Source of the DNA: Epithemia pelagica
Taxonomy: Eukaryota > Protista > Bacillariophyta
DNA length: 64,000 bases
Direction: 5' to 3'
Assembly (NCBI GenBank): GCA_946965045.2
Contig: OX337235.1
Coordinates: 2,852,001-2,916,000 of the forward strand
Made by a program: the position numbers and the translations under genes. The stretch's first letter is position 1. The number at the start of each line of letters is the position of its first letter. Shown here piece by piece: positions 31,500-39,070 of the stretch. The notes beneath the pieces are model-generated. The model saw only the letters and a list, made by a program, of their open reading frames with translations. It was not told the origin of the DNA and ran no database searches.

Positions 31500-32396
31500 G
31501 CTAGAGATACGAACGAATAATCGGAGAGTAGGTACTCGTTAGTCATAGAGTACTCGTATCCTGAGTATTCTGTATTCTGTTGTGTCAAACAGGAATAATC
31601 CTTAAGCCTTTAACGGAAGAATCCAAAATCCGAACTCCTTACTTAACTACCTTTACCACTCGTTGTCCTACCCTTCCCCACTCACTGAAGACTCACTGAG
31701 GAGTAAGTCACTCCCCACACTCACACTACCTAAAACCCCAAAAATTACTGTACTTAGATGTTTTATTCTAGTGTAGATCGTGGTCGGGTCGCGAGTCGCG
31801 AGAGGAGTGGGGGATGGGAAACATTGACTCTAAGTATTCTGTCACACTATGGATGCAAGAAGCATGCCTCGGAGTTTGATTGGCATGCAATAACTGTGAG
31901 ATAAATGATACTTCGACATAAAGCGTTATAAATCATCCGATAAAATCGGATGAGGTCACTTAAGTGACGGGGTTAATTACAAACATTTAAAGATTACCTA
32001 GTGCCCCATCGAAAGTAGGGCAAGCTTAATTGTGTAACACTAATTAGGATCACGACTACTAAGTATCCATTGAGAGAACCGATCACTTAGGAAGACCGAA
32101 GATTACCTTGGGTGCGCTGGCACGACTCCTCGTGACACAGGAAGCTAACATACTTTAATAGCCCCGGGGGACTCCTCGTCGCGGGGCGCCCCTCGTGGCT
32201 TAACTCCTCGTCGGGCAATAGCTAAGAGACGCCCCTTCAATCATGGTCATCACACCCAAAAGGGCGCATGGCCTTTGGCTTCGTCCCACGAGACATTCCG
32301 TGACACTCATGATTCATGATAGACCCCAAGATTTCAACTTCCGCCAACCAGTGACATTCATTCCTTTTCATTCATTTTGTGATCTCAGCAGCAACC

Positions 32397-35300
32397 ATGG
32401 TGCAAGAGGATTTTCAAGATGAAGACGTTCCAAACTCTCGCTCTCACCGACGAGGGAAAACCGGTGGTTACAAGCCAATGAGCGAAGCTGCCAGTGCCAG
32501 GCTTGCCAAACGAGGATCCGAGAAAACACTGCACATTCAAAACACCTTTGAACGAGCAGAGCCAGAAGAGCCCGAAGAGCAAGAACCAACCAGTCATAAC
32601 AGCACCAACGATGGTTCGTCGTCCGGACAGCAAGAACTCAAGAGCAACAGGTTGACAAGGATTGCATTCCGTTCCAAAGTTTTTTTCTTTATTCTTCTTT
32701 TGATGTTGGCAATCGCTGCCGCAGCATTCACGTATATCTACATTTCAAAGCAAGAAAATGATGAGTTCGAGAACGGCGTACGTTGAATGAAATTCAGTCA
32801 GCGTTGTTTCGTTGTTCCTGATGTGTTCCATTCGTTCTGACATGTTCCCTCGTTTGAATCTGTTTCATTCCTAGTTTACCCTGAAAGCCAAGGAGATTGC
32901 TCCCATGTTTGTGAACACTCGCAACTTCAAAGGACAGGTGGGGGAGAATCTGGCATTCACGATATCATCCCTCGCCCGTTCCTATGAAATGAAATTTCCG
33001 TTTGTTGTCATTCCAGACTTTGCGCGCCTAGCCGAAGAAGCTCGAAGAATGGCATCCAGTGACGTTGTCATGTATGTTCCGTTTGTGCCCACGAATCTCC
33101 AGTCGGACTATGAAAGTTTTGTTCAGAACCATACCGGGTGGATTGAGGCAAGCCTTGAGTTGCAAGGACTTGCGGGTGAGGACCCTGGCCCAATACCTCT
33201 TGCCATTCATGATTTCTTGGAGGATCGAAGTGGTGGAGACCACGGCCACCATGGCCACCACGGAGGACATGGCACTAACGACGAGATGACCCATAATGAC
33301 GGCACACACCAGGGCCACAACACTGGGGGAGGGCACATGGCTGGGCATCATGGCGAAGACACGACACACAATATGGGTGATACCAACATGACACATAACA
33401 TGGGTGATACCAACATGACACATAATATGGGTGATACCAACATGACACATAATATGGGTGATACCAACATGACACATAATATGGGTGATACCAACATGAC
33501 ACATAACATGGGGGATACCAACATGACACATAACATGGGGGATACCAACATGACACATAATATGGGCCACAATGACGGCATGACCGGGGATACGATGGGC
33601 AATGGAATGGGCATGGCTATGCCTAGTGGTCACCGGTCAAATAGGCTCCTTGCAATGGACATGATGAGTTCGGACATGACCAGTGGTGGGGGGCATAACC
33701 ATGATATGAACGGGGGTTATGGTTCGTCAATGACGGGTCCTTCGGGAAAAAATCATGGAATGGAGGGACAAATGGGCAATGCAGACGACGCACCTCCTTT
33801 TGTTGTGGAAGGCAACGCGTTCGAACTCTTTAATGTTACTTCGCCCTTAGGGTACGTGGCCGGAAATGAAAGTGAGCTGTACTTCGTTCGAGTCAAAAGT
33901 AGGTCTAACATGTATCTTGCAAAACAGTATGACTTGGCCCTCTCCTCGGAACGCCACACTGATAAATGCCGATTTGCAACTTGACCTTGGGTTTGCGGGG
34001 CTGACTCACTTTGCGTTTGGAGAGAGAATAAGTGTATTGTCCAGAATGAGGCAATGGGATAAACTCTTCGACAATCTTTTTCAATGCGATGGTCTCACCA
34101 ACGACAATGATGGTCGTCATTCGCACGACATACGTTGCACAAGTCCAAAGATGGAGCATGGTGTTCATAGTGGTCACGGAACGGAAATGGAAGATGGCCA
34201 TGGTATGGGAATGGACGATGGTCATGGAATGGGAATGGATAGTGGTGAAGGTGAAATGGGAATGGGAAAAGACAACGAAAGTGGAACAGGAATGGACAGC
34301 AACAATGAAATGGGGATGGACAAGGGCCATGGCCATGGCCATGGAAACGAAGATATTATGTTAACAAGACGGGTCGCTGAAGGCCATAGTCATGGTAACC
34401 ACAATCACGAAGATGGAGGAGAGAAGGAACCTGTTGGTTATATTCTTTCTCCCATTTTTTGGGACACTGCCACAAAACGAGATGTTGTTGGTTTTGTCGT
34501 AATTGTTTTCCATTGGTCCTCTTTTGTCGACTCCCTTGTGTCAGTGGATACCGAAGGTATTGACTTGGTGATCAGCGATTCGTGTGGCTCGGTATACACA
34601 TATTACCTTGCTGGCAGTGAATTTAAATTAAGAGGAAGCGGGGACATGCACGATACCAAATATGACCACTTGAGGAGTACCACACTCTTGGAAGTCGAGG
34701 AACAATTTGACCACTTGCACGAAACCTGCACGTATGTACTTGATATTTATCCTTCCAGTGAACTGGAGGATCAATATGTCTCGAACCATCCACTTCTCTA
34801 TGCCCTTGTGGTCCCCGCGATTTTCTCTTTAACCGCCATCATTTTCATGTTTTATGACTGGGCAGTGAAGAGACGAAAGGAGAAGATTACACTGACTGCG
34901 AAGAAGACCGAGGCTATTATTTCGTCCATTTTCCCCAAGAACGTTAGGGCGCGTCTTCTCGAACACGATAACATCAGCGATCCTGTGGATCAAGGCAAAC
35001 ATCGCCCTGTTTACAGAACTCGCTCCTTGTACAGTATCAAAACAGAGACAGAAGACGCTGATAATGTGAAAGAACAGAACAAAAGAAACATGCTGTCGAA
35101 ACCCATCGCCGATCTATTTCTCGATGCCACTGTTATGTTTGCAGACATCGACGGATTCAACGCCTGGTCATCGACTCGTCAGCCTTCTCAAGTCTTTGAA
35201 CTTCTGGAAGGGATGTACGGAGCATTCGACGGAATTGCGCGTCGACACAAAATATTCAAGGTTGAAACAGTTGGAGACTGCTATGTCGCCGTCGCAGGTC

Positions 35301-37246
35301 TTCCAGAGCAAAGAGCAGACCATGCTGTCGCAATGGCTCGATTTTCTGCTGCATGTCTATCAGAGTTCTGCAAGACCTCTAAACAGCTGGTGGTGCAGCT
35401 AGGTCCGGATACAGAAGAAATGGCTCTTCGAATTGGGCTTCATTCGGGACCGTAAGTTGTCACATGAATACACATATGACGTGTTTTGTGTTCTCAGTAA
35501 TGCCTTACCTTGTCACTTTTTATTGTCACTTTTCAGAGTTATAGCGGGCGTCTTGAGGGGAGAAAAGGCACGCTTCCAACTCTTTGGGGACACTGTCAAC
35601 ACTGGGGCGCGGATGGCGACAACTGGCGCTCGAAATAGGATTCACGTATCTGAAGAGACTGCGAACTCGTTGAAATCCCACGATAAGGATCACTGGTTAC
35701 TTCCACGGTTAGAAAAGGTCGTGGCCAAAGGCAAGGGAGAGCTGTGCACGTTCTGGGCATGCCCAACTAATTTTTGCAGGGATATTGGAGACTTTGCTTT
35801 AGAAGAAGATTTGAAGATGGCGAGAGAGACTGGAGATGATACATTTGTAAGCAAACGCAAAGTACGAGAACCCTCAACGAAAACACAAGATGACAAGATT
35901 GGAAGGTTGGTGGAATGGAATTGCGAAGTGTTGTCGAAGCTTCTGAAGAATTTAGCCTTAAGTCGAGAGTCCACATCACATGCCTCATTAAAGCAAAGAG
36001 TGGTTGAAGCCCAAGAACTCAGAGCACTTGAAAAGTCTCACTTCGATATGACTGAGGCCCTAGCGGCAGAAATCACAATCCCTGTTTCTGCGTCCAGAGA
36101 GCCCTTCAAAGATGCATCTACCATCTCTCTTGGCAAACCCGTGGAAGAACAAATTAAAGAGTTTGTTCAGGAGCTTGCAGCATTGTACCACGGGAACCCA
36201 TTCAGCAGTTTTGAGGTACGTCCTTCTACCACATGTCGGTATAAATCATAATGGCACAACGGCAAATGTTGAAATCATCTTACCTTTTCGCACCATCAAC
36301 GTACAGCATGCGTCCCATTGCGCAATGTTAGCAACAAAGATGCTGTCGCGGTTCGACACATCTGACGACAACGAGGCGACGGACTCCATAGGTGGTCGTA
36401 TGGCATCTGGTAAGTCAAAAACTTTCACACACCCTGTTGATAAACACTACAGTGTTTCTCATATGTTTACTTGTTGATACAATTGGGGGGTGTTTAGACC
36501 CTTTGATCCATTTGGCCATAGTCTTTTCGTCGCTTATTCTCAAGGTGAAGCATTCAGGAGTGTCCAACTCGCAGTTGGCTGTTGAGGATCCTTCTCTGTT
36601 GACCAAAATCCAAAACACAACGAATGCCGGGAATTCGACACGCTTACTCTCCCAACAACAGGCGTTTTCGACAGCATGGGACTTATTCCTCCAGGACAAA
36701 TATACCGACCTTCGTCGTATCATTGATGGTTCTCTAGTTGCTGAGTTTGTTCGGTTTCGGCAAACGGTTCTGCAAATGGTGCTAGCTACGTTCGATTTGC
36801 ATGACAGCTACGAAAAGATATCAGAAACTGGAAGGAAAGACGTGGACTCGAACGTCTTGCCGGAAAGGACTGCCCAAAGCAACGAAATGACATCCCCTGT
36901 TCCACTGTCACGTGCTCTTTCCTACGTGATCCAAGTTGTGGATATTTCTCATGCAATGCAGCATTGGCATGTCTTTCAGAAATGGAATCGGCTTTTGTTT
37001 CTGGAAATGGCCCAAGCATTTGAAGCGGGTCGTGCGGGACAAGATCCCTCTCATGTTTGGTACGAAAGGGAAAAGGCATTTCTTGACAATGTGGCCGTGC
37101 CATTGGCGGAACAACTGGTGGGACGTGGTATCTTTCGAAAGGCGTACGTAGACGAGCTTCGGCAATACGCAACTCAAAATCGTCAACACTGGGAATATCA
37201 GGGGCAAGATCTTGTTGCATCATTTGTCAACGAATGTCAGCAATAG
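32397..37246 (+). CDS. Receptor-type guanylate cyclase: TM - large extracellular loop - TM - class III cyclase - PDE-like domain (6 exons)
   Basis: Introns 32778-32874, 33852-33927, 35452-35536, 36216-36306 and one from 36410 (acceptor uncertain). Cyclase VMFADIDGF, FKVETVGDCY, GLHSGP, RFQLFGDTVNTGARM. Glu in KVET suggests GTP specificity. Confidence 0.9.
33364..33567 (+). repeat. Coding 27-bp minisatellite, 7.5 copies (THNMGDTNM)
   Basis: ACACA(T/C)AA(T/C)ATGGG(T/G)GATACCAACATG tandem units. Confidence 0.95.
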
Positions 37247-37723: not shown

Positions 37724-39070
37724 CTACGACGACTTTTTCTCCTCTACAGTGGTTTCATCAATGGCGTCCATCTCATTTGACTGTAGACCTAACCATGCCA
37801 ATACTCGACCCTTGACATGATTTCGACACGGAAAGCTTTGCCAAAAAACCCAAAGAAAGACAAACTTCTCCCCTTGCGAACCAGGAACGACAATATTGAT
37901 AAGCATGGAAACCCAGCCAACCAGATCCAGAATATCAAAACGATGAATCCATTGACGCGCCATGTCCATGTAGGGAACAAGGAACGGCAGACCGTGCCAC
38001 AGGACGGCGAGATCCAACCAACTTCTCGCGGCGTCACGATCTTCAAAAACGAACCAAGCAACTGCAATCATGGAAGCGCAGAAGATTATTTTCAACCAAA
38101 AAGATGGATTGTTGTAATCACAGTATGATACATTGACGAATGTCAGGACCAAAAGGTTTGTCCAGACTGCCCAAAAGGTGATTTTTTCATAGCCAACAAA
38201 GTTGTAGGGCCATCTCAGAACGAGTCGAAGAACAAACGTTGTCAGCAACAGCCCAAAACCATGAAACACCAACATGGTGAGCTGATTGATCATGAAAGCG
38301 CAGAGAGATACCAACAGTAAGAGCGGTCGAAAAATTGCTGGAGATTGTAGAAGAGCAGCTTGAAATTTGGTGATCGCCGGAATCAATTTATCGCAAAAAT
38401 CCTTCTTCATGGTTGCTTCCACACTTTTTCCACCATTTTCTTCAAGTTCTTTGTCGGAAAGAAGAAGAGCCTTGCTATTGTCACGCACGGAGTAGTAAAA
38501 ATGACATGTATGATCGACCGTCACGAAGGCCTTCTCAGAATCCCGTTTTTCCGGGGTTTCAAATCGGATTAGGTTTAGAGAAGCATCCAAAACGGACTGA
38601 TCGAGGGTGCTCTCATCCTGTTCTGTTTGTGGTTTCAGCTTTCCTATCATATCAGCTACCTTTTTGCAATTTCCTGGAAAGGGCACGTCCAGTGGTCCTT
38701 CGTACTCTTCAAAATCAATCTTGGCAGATTTGCCATCTTCATTGACGATGCAATTTGGAATTGTCTTTACTATCTCACTGATCTCGAGGAGGCAATCAAC
38801 ATTCAACTCCGAAATTGTTCTCATATCATCATTGCTGAATGGCCAGGAAGATACCTCATGGATTGCTGCCATTACGTTGTAAAGCGTGAGGAAGAAGATG
38901 AGTCGTCGAAAAGGGAAGTGGTGCCCATACCATGATTCCTTGTGGAGGCGACTCTGAAAGTTGGCTTGAGATATCACTGCGCGAAAGAAACTTAAAGGCT
39001 TCACCGGTGTCATTACCACTGTTGTGGTTTCTTGATTCGACACATCGTTGATATCTTCATTGTTCCTCAT
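37724..39070 (-). CDS. Hypothetical multi-pass membrane protein
   Basis: 448-aa ORF with one N-terminal and about 5-6 C-terminal hydrophobic segments; family not recognised. Confidence 0.7.
   Translation of the reverse strand: MRNNEDINDVSNQETTTVVMTPVKPLSFFRAVISQANFQSRLHKESWYGHHFPFRRLIFFLTLYNVMAAIHEVSSWPFSNDDMRTISELNVDCLLEISEIVKTIPNCIVNEDGKSAKIDFEEYEGPLDVPFPGNCKKVADMIGKLKPQTEQDESTLDQSVLDASLNLIRFETPEKRDSEKAFVTVDHTCHFYYSVRDNSKALLLSDKELEENGGKSVEATMKKDFCDKLIPAITKFQAALLQSPAIFRPLLLLVSLCAFMINQLTMLVFHGFGLLLTTFVLRLVLRWPYNFVGYEKITFWAVWTNLLVLTFVNVSYCDYNNPSFWLKIIFCASMIAVAWFVFEDRDAARSWLDLAVLWHGLPFLVPYMDMARQWIHRFDILDLVGWVSMLINIVVPGSQGEKFVFLWVFWQSFPCRNHVKGRVLAWLGLQSNEMDAIDETTVEEKKSS

Follow-up and report, generated by a model that had tools for sequence, protein, structure and literature searches.

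Introduction

Receptor proteins that join a guanylate cyclase (GC) to a phosphodiesterase (PDE) have been described in the diatoms Seminavis and Pseudo-nitzschia, where they are induced by sex pheromone and are linked to cyclic GMP (cGMP) (PMC8027222, PMC5485032). Tracts dense in His and Met have been described in other proteins: in human CTR1, both Cu(II) and Cu(I) are bound by His-Met clusters outside the cell (PMC8867124), and a part in binding Cu is suggested for Met/His repeats in CopA and CopB (PMC12428095). As context only, GC and PKG genes of the diatom Mayamaea are reported to rise with Cu exposure (PMC9724779). The present analysis concerns a gene in a 64,000-nucleotide stretch of the genome of the diatom Epithemia pelagica (assembly GCA_946965045.2, contig OX337235.1, positions 2,852,001 to 2,916,000 of the forward strand; hereafter the window), which encodes a receptor cyclase with two low-complexity, His/Met-rich inserts between its two transmembrane (TM) helices. 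An original prediction from the sequence had presented it as a candidate metal-sensing cGMP receptor with no described example. The receptor family proved to be already described, and the CHASE ectodomain had been overlooked, as had the PDE-like domain at the C-terminus.

Gene model and receptor family

The gene was modelled by eye from open reading frames (ORFs) and sequence. Its coding length is 4410 nt (1470 codons), its five introns are all GT..AG and measure 76-97 nt, and every exon piece is open in frame. Searches and fold predictions were run on single exon pieces or on relatives. The predicted protein of about 1470 aa has its N-terminus inside the cell, followed by TM1, ectodomain, TM2, class III cyclase and PDE-like domain. 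The features, numbered from the first letter of the window, are as follows.

32397..37246, + strand: whole gene, six exons
32397-32777, 32875-33851, 33928-35451, 35537-36215, 36307-36409 and 36498-37243, + strand: exons, the last followed by the stop codon
32679..32744, + strand: TM1 (VFFFILLLMLAIAAAAFTYIYI), with basic residues flanking it on the cytosolic side
32745..34792, + strand: ectodomain, about 625 aa long where relatives have 320-420 aa, with the two inserts and introns 1 and 2 lying within it
33238..33780, + strand: insert 1, a 181-aa tract rich in His, Met, Gly, Asn, Thr and Asp within exon 2
33359..33566, + strand: 27-nt minisatellite in insert 1 (Tandem Repeats Finder, 7.7 copies, 96% matches)
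34079..34426, + strand: insert 2, a predicted disordered loop (exon 3 aa 51-166) that includes the block originally delimited at 34118-34410
34793..34855, + strand: TM2 (LLYALVVPAIFSLTAIIFMFY)
35123..35756, + strand: class III cyclase catalytic domain (Pfam PF00211), split by intron 3 (35452-35536)
36307..37243, + strand: PDE-like domain, exons 5-6, metal ligands lost

The cytosolic N-terminus upstream of TM1 is about 94 aa long and ends in RLTRIAFRSK, and TM2 is followed by the cytosolic sequence DWAVKRRKEK. Because of these positive-inside flanks, both inserts were placed outside the cytosol. An identical two-TM layout was present in 30 full-length relatives. As predicted, the gene therefore has the layout of a two-TM receptor-type cyclase with both blocks extracellular, the PF00211 match lying after TM2. 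The RNA evidence consisted of assembled Logan contigs, in which one splice junction was confirmed and insert 1 was covered, insert 2 and introns 1-3 being uncovered. Intron 4 (36216-36306) was skipped exactly as modelled in a marine metatranscriptome contig, and other RNA contigs stopped at the exon borders 36215 and 36409. Introns 1-3 were based on frame continuity and on homology to paralogues.

The cyclase domain scored 82.3 bits in exon 3 and 48.2 bits in exon 4 against PF00211 (cut-off 21.9), the two pieces jointly covering profile positions 8-180. The motifs FADIDGF, VGDCY, KVETVGD and TVNTGARM were all present, and FADIDGF, VGDCY and TVNTGARM were conserved with the relatives. By the established motifs of class III cyclases, we take FADIDGF and VGDCY to carry the metal-binding Asp residues, and TVNTGARM to carry the transition-state Asn and Arg; as read from these motifs, the catalytic residues are intact. 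The substrate specificity of such cyclases is set by a pair of residues, Glu with Cys, Ser or Thr for GTP, and Lys with Asp for ATP. Here Glu stands at the first position (KVETVGD), a GC-like state, and Gln at the second (RFQLFGD), which is true of the entire family. The product is likely to be cGMP, given the GC-type residue at the first position and a family literature that is linked to cGMP, and these points count in favour of the cyclic-nucleotide part of the original prediction (PMC8027222, PMC5485032).

An exhaustive phmmer search with exon 3 recovered about 20,000 cyclases, and the best 150 relatives had the C-terminal half of the ectodomain, TM2 and the cyclase in common. The full-length relatives were 1150-1250 aa long, with two TM helices, an ectodomain of 320-420 aa, and a GC domain followed by a PDE domain. 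When the exon 3 ectodomain was used in a word-based protein search, the only matches were the copy of the gene in a second assembly and one paralogue, as the length window of that search hides the full-length relatives. Judged from these shared domains, the gene belongs to the diatom receptor-type GC/PDE family. More than 60 cyclase genes were present in the genome. At C5:3423000-3497000, at least seven paralogous receptor cyclases form a tandem cluster and have an intron at cyclase profile position 110 in common.

Fold of the ectodomain

The fold of the ectodomain was assessed with an AlphaFold2 (AF2) model of a relative (P0006:78-425), which was built from a 29-sequence alignment and reached a pLDDT of 83 and a pTM of 0.83. 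This model aligned to the CHASE sensor of Arabidopsis AHK4 with a Z score of 19.3 and a root mean square deviation of 3.1 Å over 244/262 residues, and to Xanthomonas PcrK with a Z score of 17.7. The Z scores of dCache and KinD-type sensors were at most 14. The Pfam CHASE family (PF03924) matched the ectodomains of seven of the 29 relatives at E <=1 (best 1.8e-5), with no match in the exon pieces of the receptor gene, nor in five relatives scanned whole. A profile of the family ectodomain had no significant match among PDB sequences. The CHASE identity became visible because folds were compared and Pfam was applied to individual members, and not through the comparison of the profile with PDB sequences.

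The receptor gene aligned to the model of the relative on either side of each insert, and the excess length of its ectodomain over those of the relatives corresponds to the two inserts. Insert 1, in the N-terminal half of the ectodomain, aligned to a loop at model residues 123-147, where the pLDDT of the relative's model is below 50. Insert 2 directly precedes the conserved strand PVGYILSPIF, the first strand of the conserved C-terminal beta-sheet. When the gene's own exon 3 ectodomain piece was modelled with AF2, aa 51-166 had pLDDT values of 38-56 and no secondary structure, with flanks above 90. As modelled, the ectodomain is a CHASE fold in which two loops have been expanded into low-complexity tracts. 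The C-terminal subdomain of the family ectodomain carries a conserved motif, G-x-G-D-x-H-D-x-x-Y-D, and two near-invariant Cys residues.

Composition, coding status and repeats of the inserts

Block 1 contains, in 181 aa, 37 Gly, 30 Met, 25 His, 25 Asn, 24 Thr and 16 Asp, with just three Lys and Arg residues together and three large hydrophobic residues. The original estimates of about 25 His and 30 Met were therefore exact. Block 2 (34118-34408), in frame within exon 3, contains 22 Gly, 14 His, 12 Met, 9 Asp and 9 Glu in 97 aa. The GHGMGM and GHGHGH strings reported for it were recovered as two copies of DGHGMGMD plus GHGHGHG. The tetrapeptides NRLL (block 1) and TRRV (block 2) were also found as described. 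The remaining 1188 residues are 2.8% His and 2.2% Met, which makes the blocks enriched five- to eight-fold.

The core of insert 1 consists, from 33373 onward, of seven full MGDTNMTHN units, each with one N-x-T sequon (NMT) and one MxHxM motif. All seven encode the same peptide, and their DNA varies solely at two third-codon positions. Block 2 contains a 24-nt tandem repeat of 2.9 copies with 82% matches. At least part of the expansion of the inserts thus came from tandem duplication of units of 27 nt and 24 nt. In the non-repetitive beginning of insert 1, His is encoded by both CAC and CAT. Of the residues one step away from the His codons, those that are basic, aromatic or hydrophobic (R, Y, L, P) hardly occur in the inserts. 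Minus-strand ORFs over the repeats (33028-33633 and others) were rejected as genes, being by-products of the repeat.

For non-repetitive non-coding sequence, the chance of an open frame over 181 and 97 codons is 1.7e-4 and 0.009, respectively. Metatranscriptome contigs matched insert 1 at 33241-33392, 33363-33419 and 33508-33711. That the inserts might be spliced out of the mRNA had been raised at the outset; the open frames, together with a relative that carries equivalent loops in an intronless ORF, establish that both are coding, the RNA contigs bearing on insert 1. The reality of both inserts and the receptor architecture are near certain.

In the 60.5-Mb genome no further copies of either block were found, each being a single occurrence, and the idea that the blocks are a dispersed genomic module was accordingly rejected. 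The DNA encoding HGHGHG occurs in the genome at about the frequency of its control. Genomic matches to HGMGMD were set aside as irrelevant, as the three other exact 18-mers all lie in a 55-aa ORF of what looks to be a dispersed repeat. This ORF (VLLRKHGMGMDNGDSTKK...) is present in three near-identical copies (C2:4330575, C16:2851749 and C18:417722) and has an exact 18-mer in common with insert 2. Look-ups in the ESM Atlas with both blocks gave no usable match.

A second assembly, from the same or a sibling strain, has one extra 27-nt unit in insert 1, in frame, which brings the number of copies to 9. In insert 2 it has a 3-nt deletion (34354) and two amino-acid changes. Short-read contigs break within the minisatellite. 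Relative to the window, the second assembly and a DNA run of the same organism both carry the extra unit and the 3-nt deletion, as well as 27 nt inserted into the 5' leader at 32333. The differences between insert 1 and the environmental RNA contigs touch Gly, Ser, Asn and Asp, and none falls on His or Met.

The PDE-like domain

The Pfam PDEase_I family (PF00233) matched the gene with 33.6 bits (exon 6; cut-off 24.8), compared to 104-111 bits in the relatives. In the alignment (regions 36190-36570 and 36307-37243), the relatives' motif FHNFEHASH is replaced by FSSFEHASH, and a second motif reads SLILKVKHSGVSN here and ALIHDVDHPGVPN in the relatives. These changes, HN to SS and HDxD to LKVK, fall at sites that hold metal and acid residues in the relatives and in solved PDEs. 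The domain is probably a non-catalytic pseudo-PDE that is PDE-like in fold. As far as its residues and the absence of PDE exons from the closest paralogue allow this to be read, the receptor in the clade of these two genes became a cyclase without self-degradation of its product. Members of the GC/PDE family would thus be able to lose PDE activity, a point that stands even if the proposal about metals made below fails.

Paralogues and relatives

The closest paralogue (L031, C13:1406488-1409254) shares about 50% identity with the receptor gene over the folded regions, and its inserts occupy the same two positions. Its insert 1 is 126 aa long, with 13 His and one Met, and its insert 2 is 114 aa long, with 25 His, 30 Asp, 20 Glu and no Met. 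These inserts could not be aligned to those of the receptor gene and lack the 27-nt repeat, and the paralogue is without PDE exons. A desaturase-like gene comes after L031 (itself at about 1175-4456 of C13:1405000-1412000), on the opposite strand.

In three further paralogues insert 1 is missing, and site 2 has only a short loop that is rich in His (for example DHAHQGHSHSHAAGSDHEHHG). Among the relatives from other organisms, P0008 carries repeats of the HGNGEMxH type at site 2, and the loops of P0027 and P0034 at that site are His/acidic. In P0112, a single intronless ORF of 1252 aa includes His-rich loops at both sites, the site-2 loop being His/acidic. In P0094, MDHGSDMGMDHGTD was found in another loop. 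When 128 relatives were placed on a FastTree tree, about five changes were required for the strongly His-rich state, of which the well-supported branches force just two. From these sequences, His-richness has been retained or regained repeatedly, and only this gene and a few others are rich in Met. A scan of JGI metagenomes for close orthologues gave no confirmed locus.

Genomic neighbourhood

A neighbouring ORF of 448 aa (37724-39070, - strand) seems, judged by sequence, to contain hydrophobic, membrane-type stretches and has no Pfam match. No functional hints came from the neighbouring genes.

Interpretation of the loops

Our tentative proposal is that the two loops chelate metals and so modulate a CHASE-type receptor cyclase, with the step from metal to modulation put forward as a possibility and with reserve. 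Chelation by the loops is chemically plausible by analogy, given their dense His and Met together with Asp and Glu, their near lack of Lys, Arg and hydrophobic residues and their extracytoplasmic location, and it agrees with the His-richness that has been kept; a role in metal sensing would be a further, conjectural step. The property under selection would be a high density of imidazole ligands, here also of thioether ligands, accompanied by carboxylates and by almost no basic or hydrophobic residues. Such loops could act at the cell surface as polydentate chelators for Cu, Zn or Ni. Metal loading would compact them or cross-link them within the receptor dimer, and this would bias the CHASE sensor and the output of the cyclase, probably cGMP. 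The loops would then modulate an existing ligand sensor and would not be the whole sensor. Breakdown of the signal by the receptor itself would not be expected, since its PDE is presumed to be inactive. That His-richness has outlasted an old divergence between paralogues, and that it recurs at one and the same loop, argues for some selection on that property.

Several observations weigh against this proposal. Both metal binding and metal-dependent signalling are argued, by analogy, from composition. The motifs MXXMXHXXM, MxxMxM and MxMxxM had no match in either block; the spacing found instead was seven MxHxM and 11 MxxxM in block 1, and four MxM and five HxH in block 2. No RNA contig over insert 2 was found among the Logan contigs. 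The original prediction had proposed a comparison with paralogous cyclases to confirm that the inserts are specific: in the closest paralogue, His-rich inserts occupy the same two sites, and Met-richness is not conserved. Strongly His-rich loops at site 2 were present in only 6 of the 128 aligned relatives, and family-wide the mean His content of this loop was 3.1%, compared to 2.5% overall. Since most relatives lack His-rich loops, the receptor must work without them. Within the species, the core of insert 1 is a young minisatellite whose copy number differs between the two assemblies, and the extra unit of the second assembly carries a change from His to Arg. Insert 1 differs from the environmental RNA contigs by five nonsynonymous and three synonymous changes, compared to 6:19 elsewhere (p = 0.08), and the differences of the second assembly are concentrated in insert 2 (p = 0.05). 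These elevated differences are as expected under relaxed constraint, and the nonsynonymous excess and the indels indicate a faster evolution of the inserts than of the folded domains. Their polymorphism, their predicted disorder and the fact that most relatives lack them all suggest that the basic receptor can do without these loops. Furthermore, replication slippage can preserve a low-complexity composition without selection.

The same observations are accommodated if the inserts are slippage products of the 24-nt and 27-nt units, tolerated in CHASE loops that would take up hydrophilic, disordered sequence of any kind, and with no specific role, and to this explanation we give equal weight. 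The His/Met bias could then quite possibly be a by-product of a seed repeat rich in ATG, CAT and GGN, with the ligand sensed via the CHASE pocket. Tandem repeats at both sites, a copy number that is polymorphic between assemblies and the raised level of nonsynonymous differences and indels are all concordant with it, as are the predicted disorder of the site-2 loop, the low confidence of the site-1 loop in the relative's model, the failure of the insert sequences to align between paralogues and the lack of such loops in most family members. It accounts less readily for the paralogue with flanks about 50% identical, which keeps its His-richness at both sites with other partner residues and other DNA, and for the recurrence of His-richness at the same loop in several separate lineages. 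The seven full units, moreover, encode one peptide despite two varying third-codon positions, and basic and hydrophobic residues have been excluded from the inserts. Another possibility, which we consider unlikely, is that the loops bind metal at the surface without signalling, as a reservoir or buffer for the uptake of Cu or Zn or for protection, with the cyclase under another ligand. The arguments from composition apply to it as they do to modulation of the receptor, and the His-Met ectodomains of Ctr1 serve in capture and not in signalling (PMC8867124); however, a signalling receptor of low abundance would be a poor store of metal, and the tracts lie inside a sensor fold and not at a free terminus.

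Insert 1 may also be seen mainly as an N-glycosylated spacer or shield, a mucin-like brush that alters ligand access or blocks proteases. Its repeat holds seven NMT sequons, compared to four in the rest of the ectodomain pieces, and is extracellular or luminal by topology. Such sequon arrays are nevertheless absent from insert 2 and from either insert of the paralogue, and what recurs across the relatives is His and not N-x-S/T, so that we regard the shield as improbable. RXL is a processing signal in diatom biosilica proteins, and the original prediction had suggested cleavage of the ectodomain at RxL or dibasic sites (NRLL, TRRV), with the release of metal-binding peptides. NRL does occur in insert 1 of both the gene (NRLL) and the paralogue (NRLF). 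RxL is, however, at chance frequency (7 in the whole protein, compared to about 8 expected from its Arg and Leu content), TRRV is not conserved in the paralogue, and cleavage at either motif would split the sensor because both lie inside a single folded CHASE domain. We regard this suggestion as very improbable.

The proposal of metal-chelating modulators also has a stronger form, in which the protein is a eukaryotic surface receptor for trace metals: Cu, Zn or Ni on the loops would directly set cGMP, and the paralogues with His, Asp and Glu would be tuned to other cations. We think this doubtful. The literature searched yielded no example of a surface receptor for metals that is coupled to a second messenger. 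If it were true, there would be a small diatom family of metal-to-cGMP sensors. To our knowledge, the perception by diatoms of trace metals such as Cu, Zn and Fe, which are limiting or poisonous at sea, is largely uncharacterised. The gene is a concrete, testable candidate, with an apparently intact cyclase, a PDE that seems to have inactivated itself and about 280 residues of loops rich in metal ligands, and paralogue L031 provides a natural swap of composition, with Asp and Glu in place of Met. The CHASE-type ectodomain of the GC/PDE family, mostly missed by Pfam, should aid the search for ligands, including the sex pheromones, and this stands even if the proposal about metals fails.

Comparison with known systems

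The nearest parallels to the inserts themselves are the Met/His regions of Ctr1, CopA, PcoA, CopB, CueO and CopI, which are likewise extracytoplasmic, flexible and dense in His and Met, with neighbouring Asp (PMC8867124, PMC12428095, PMC13308877, PMC3847284). The tracts of the Ctr1/CopA type are documented ligands of Cu(I) and Cu(II) and are built of short periodic units, which in the receptor gene are 8-9 aa long. They have no homology to the inserts, and the proteins that carry them transport or oxidise copper, whereas the inserts are embedded in a signalling receptor. As the exact MXXMXHXXM and Mets motifs are absent, the likeness to Cu-binding tracts is one of analogy and not of membership.

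The ectodomain resembles the CHASE sensors AHK4/CRE1, the cytokinin receptor (PDB 3T4J/3T4S), and PcrK (6K62) in its long stalk helix and its two alpha/beta (PAS-like) subdomains, and the alignment of the relative's model spans nearly the whole of the solved domains. It differs from AHK4 and PcrK in sequence, with an identity of 9-12%, and in output, which here is a cyclase and there a histidine kinase. Long His-rich loops were in none of the CHASE models or structures examined, whereas the receptor gene has them. In overall plan, the closest described protein is Sro991_g228730 of Seminavis robusta (Moeys et al. 2016, cited in PMC8027222, PMC5485032). As far as it is described in those citing papers, it has the same topology, with a short cytosolic N-terminus, an ectodomain between two TM helices, a GC domain and a PDE domain; compared to that account, the Epithemia gene is distinguished by its two His/Met-rich inserts, its ectodomain of about 625 aa and a PDE domain without the HD and HN metal and acid residues.

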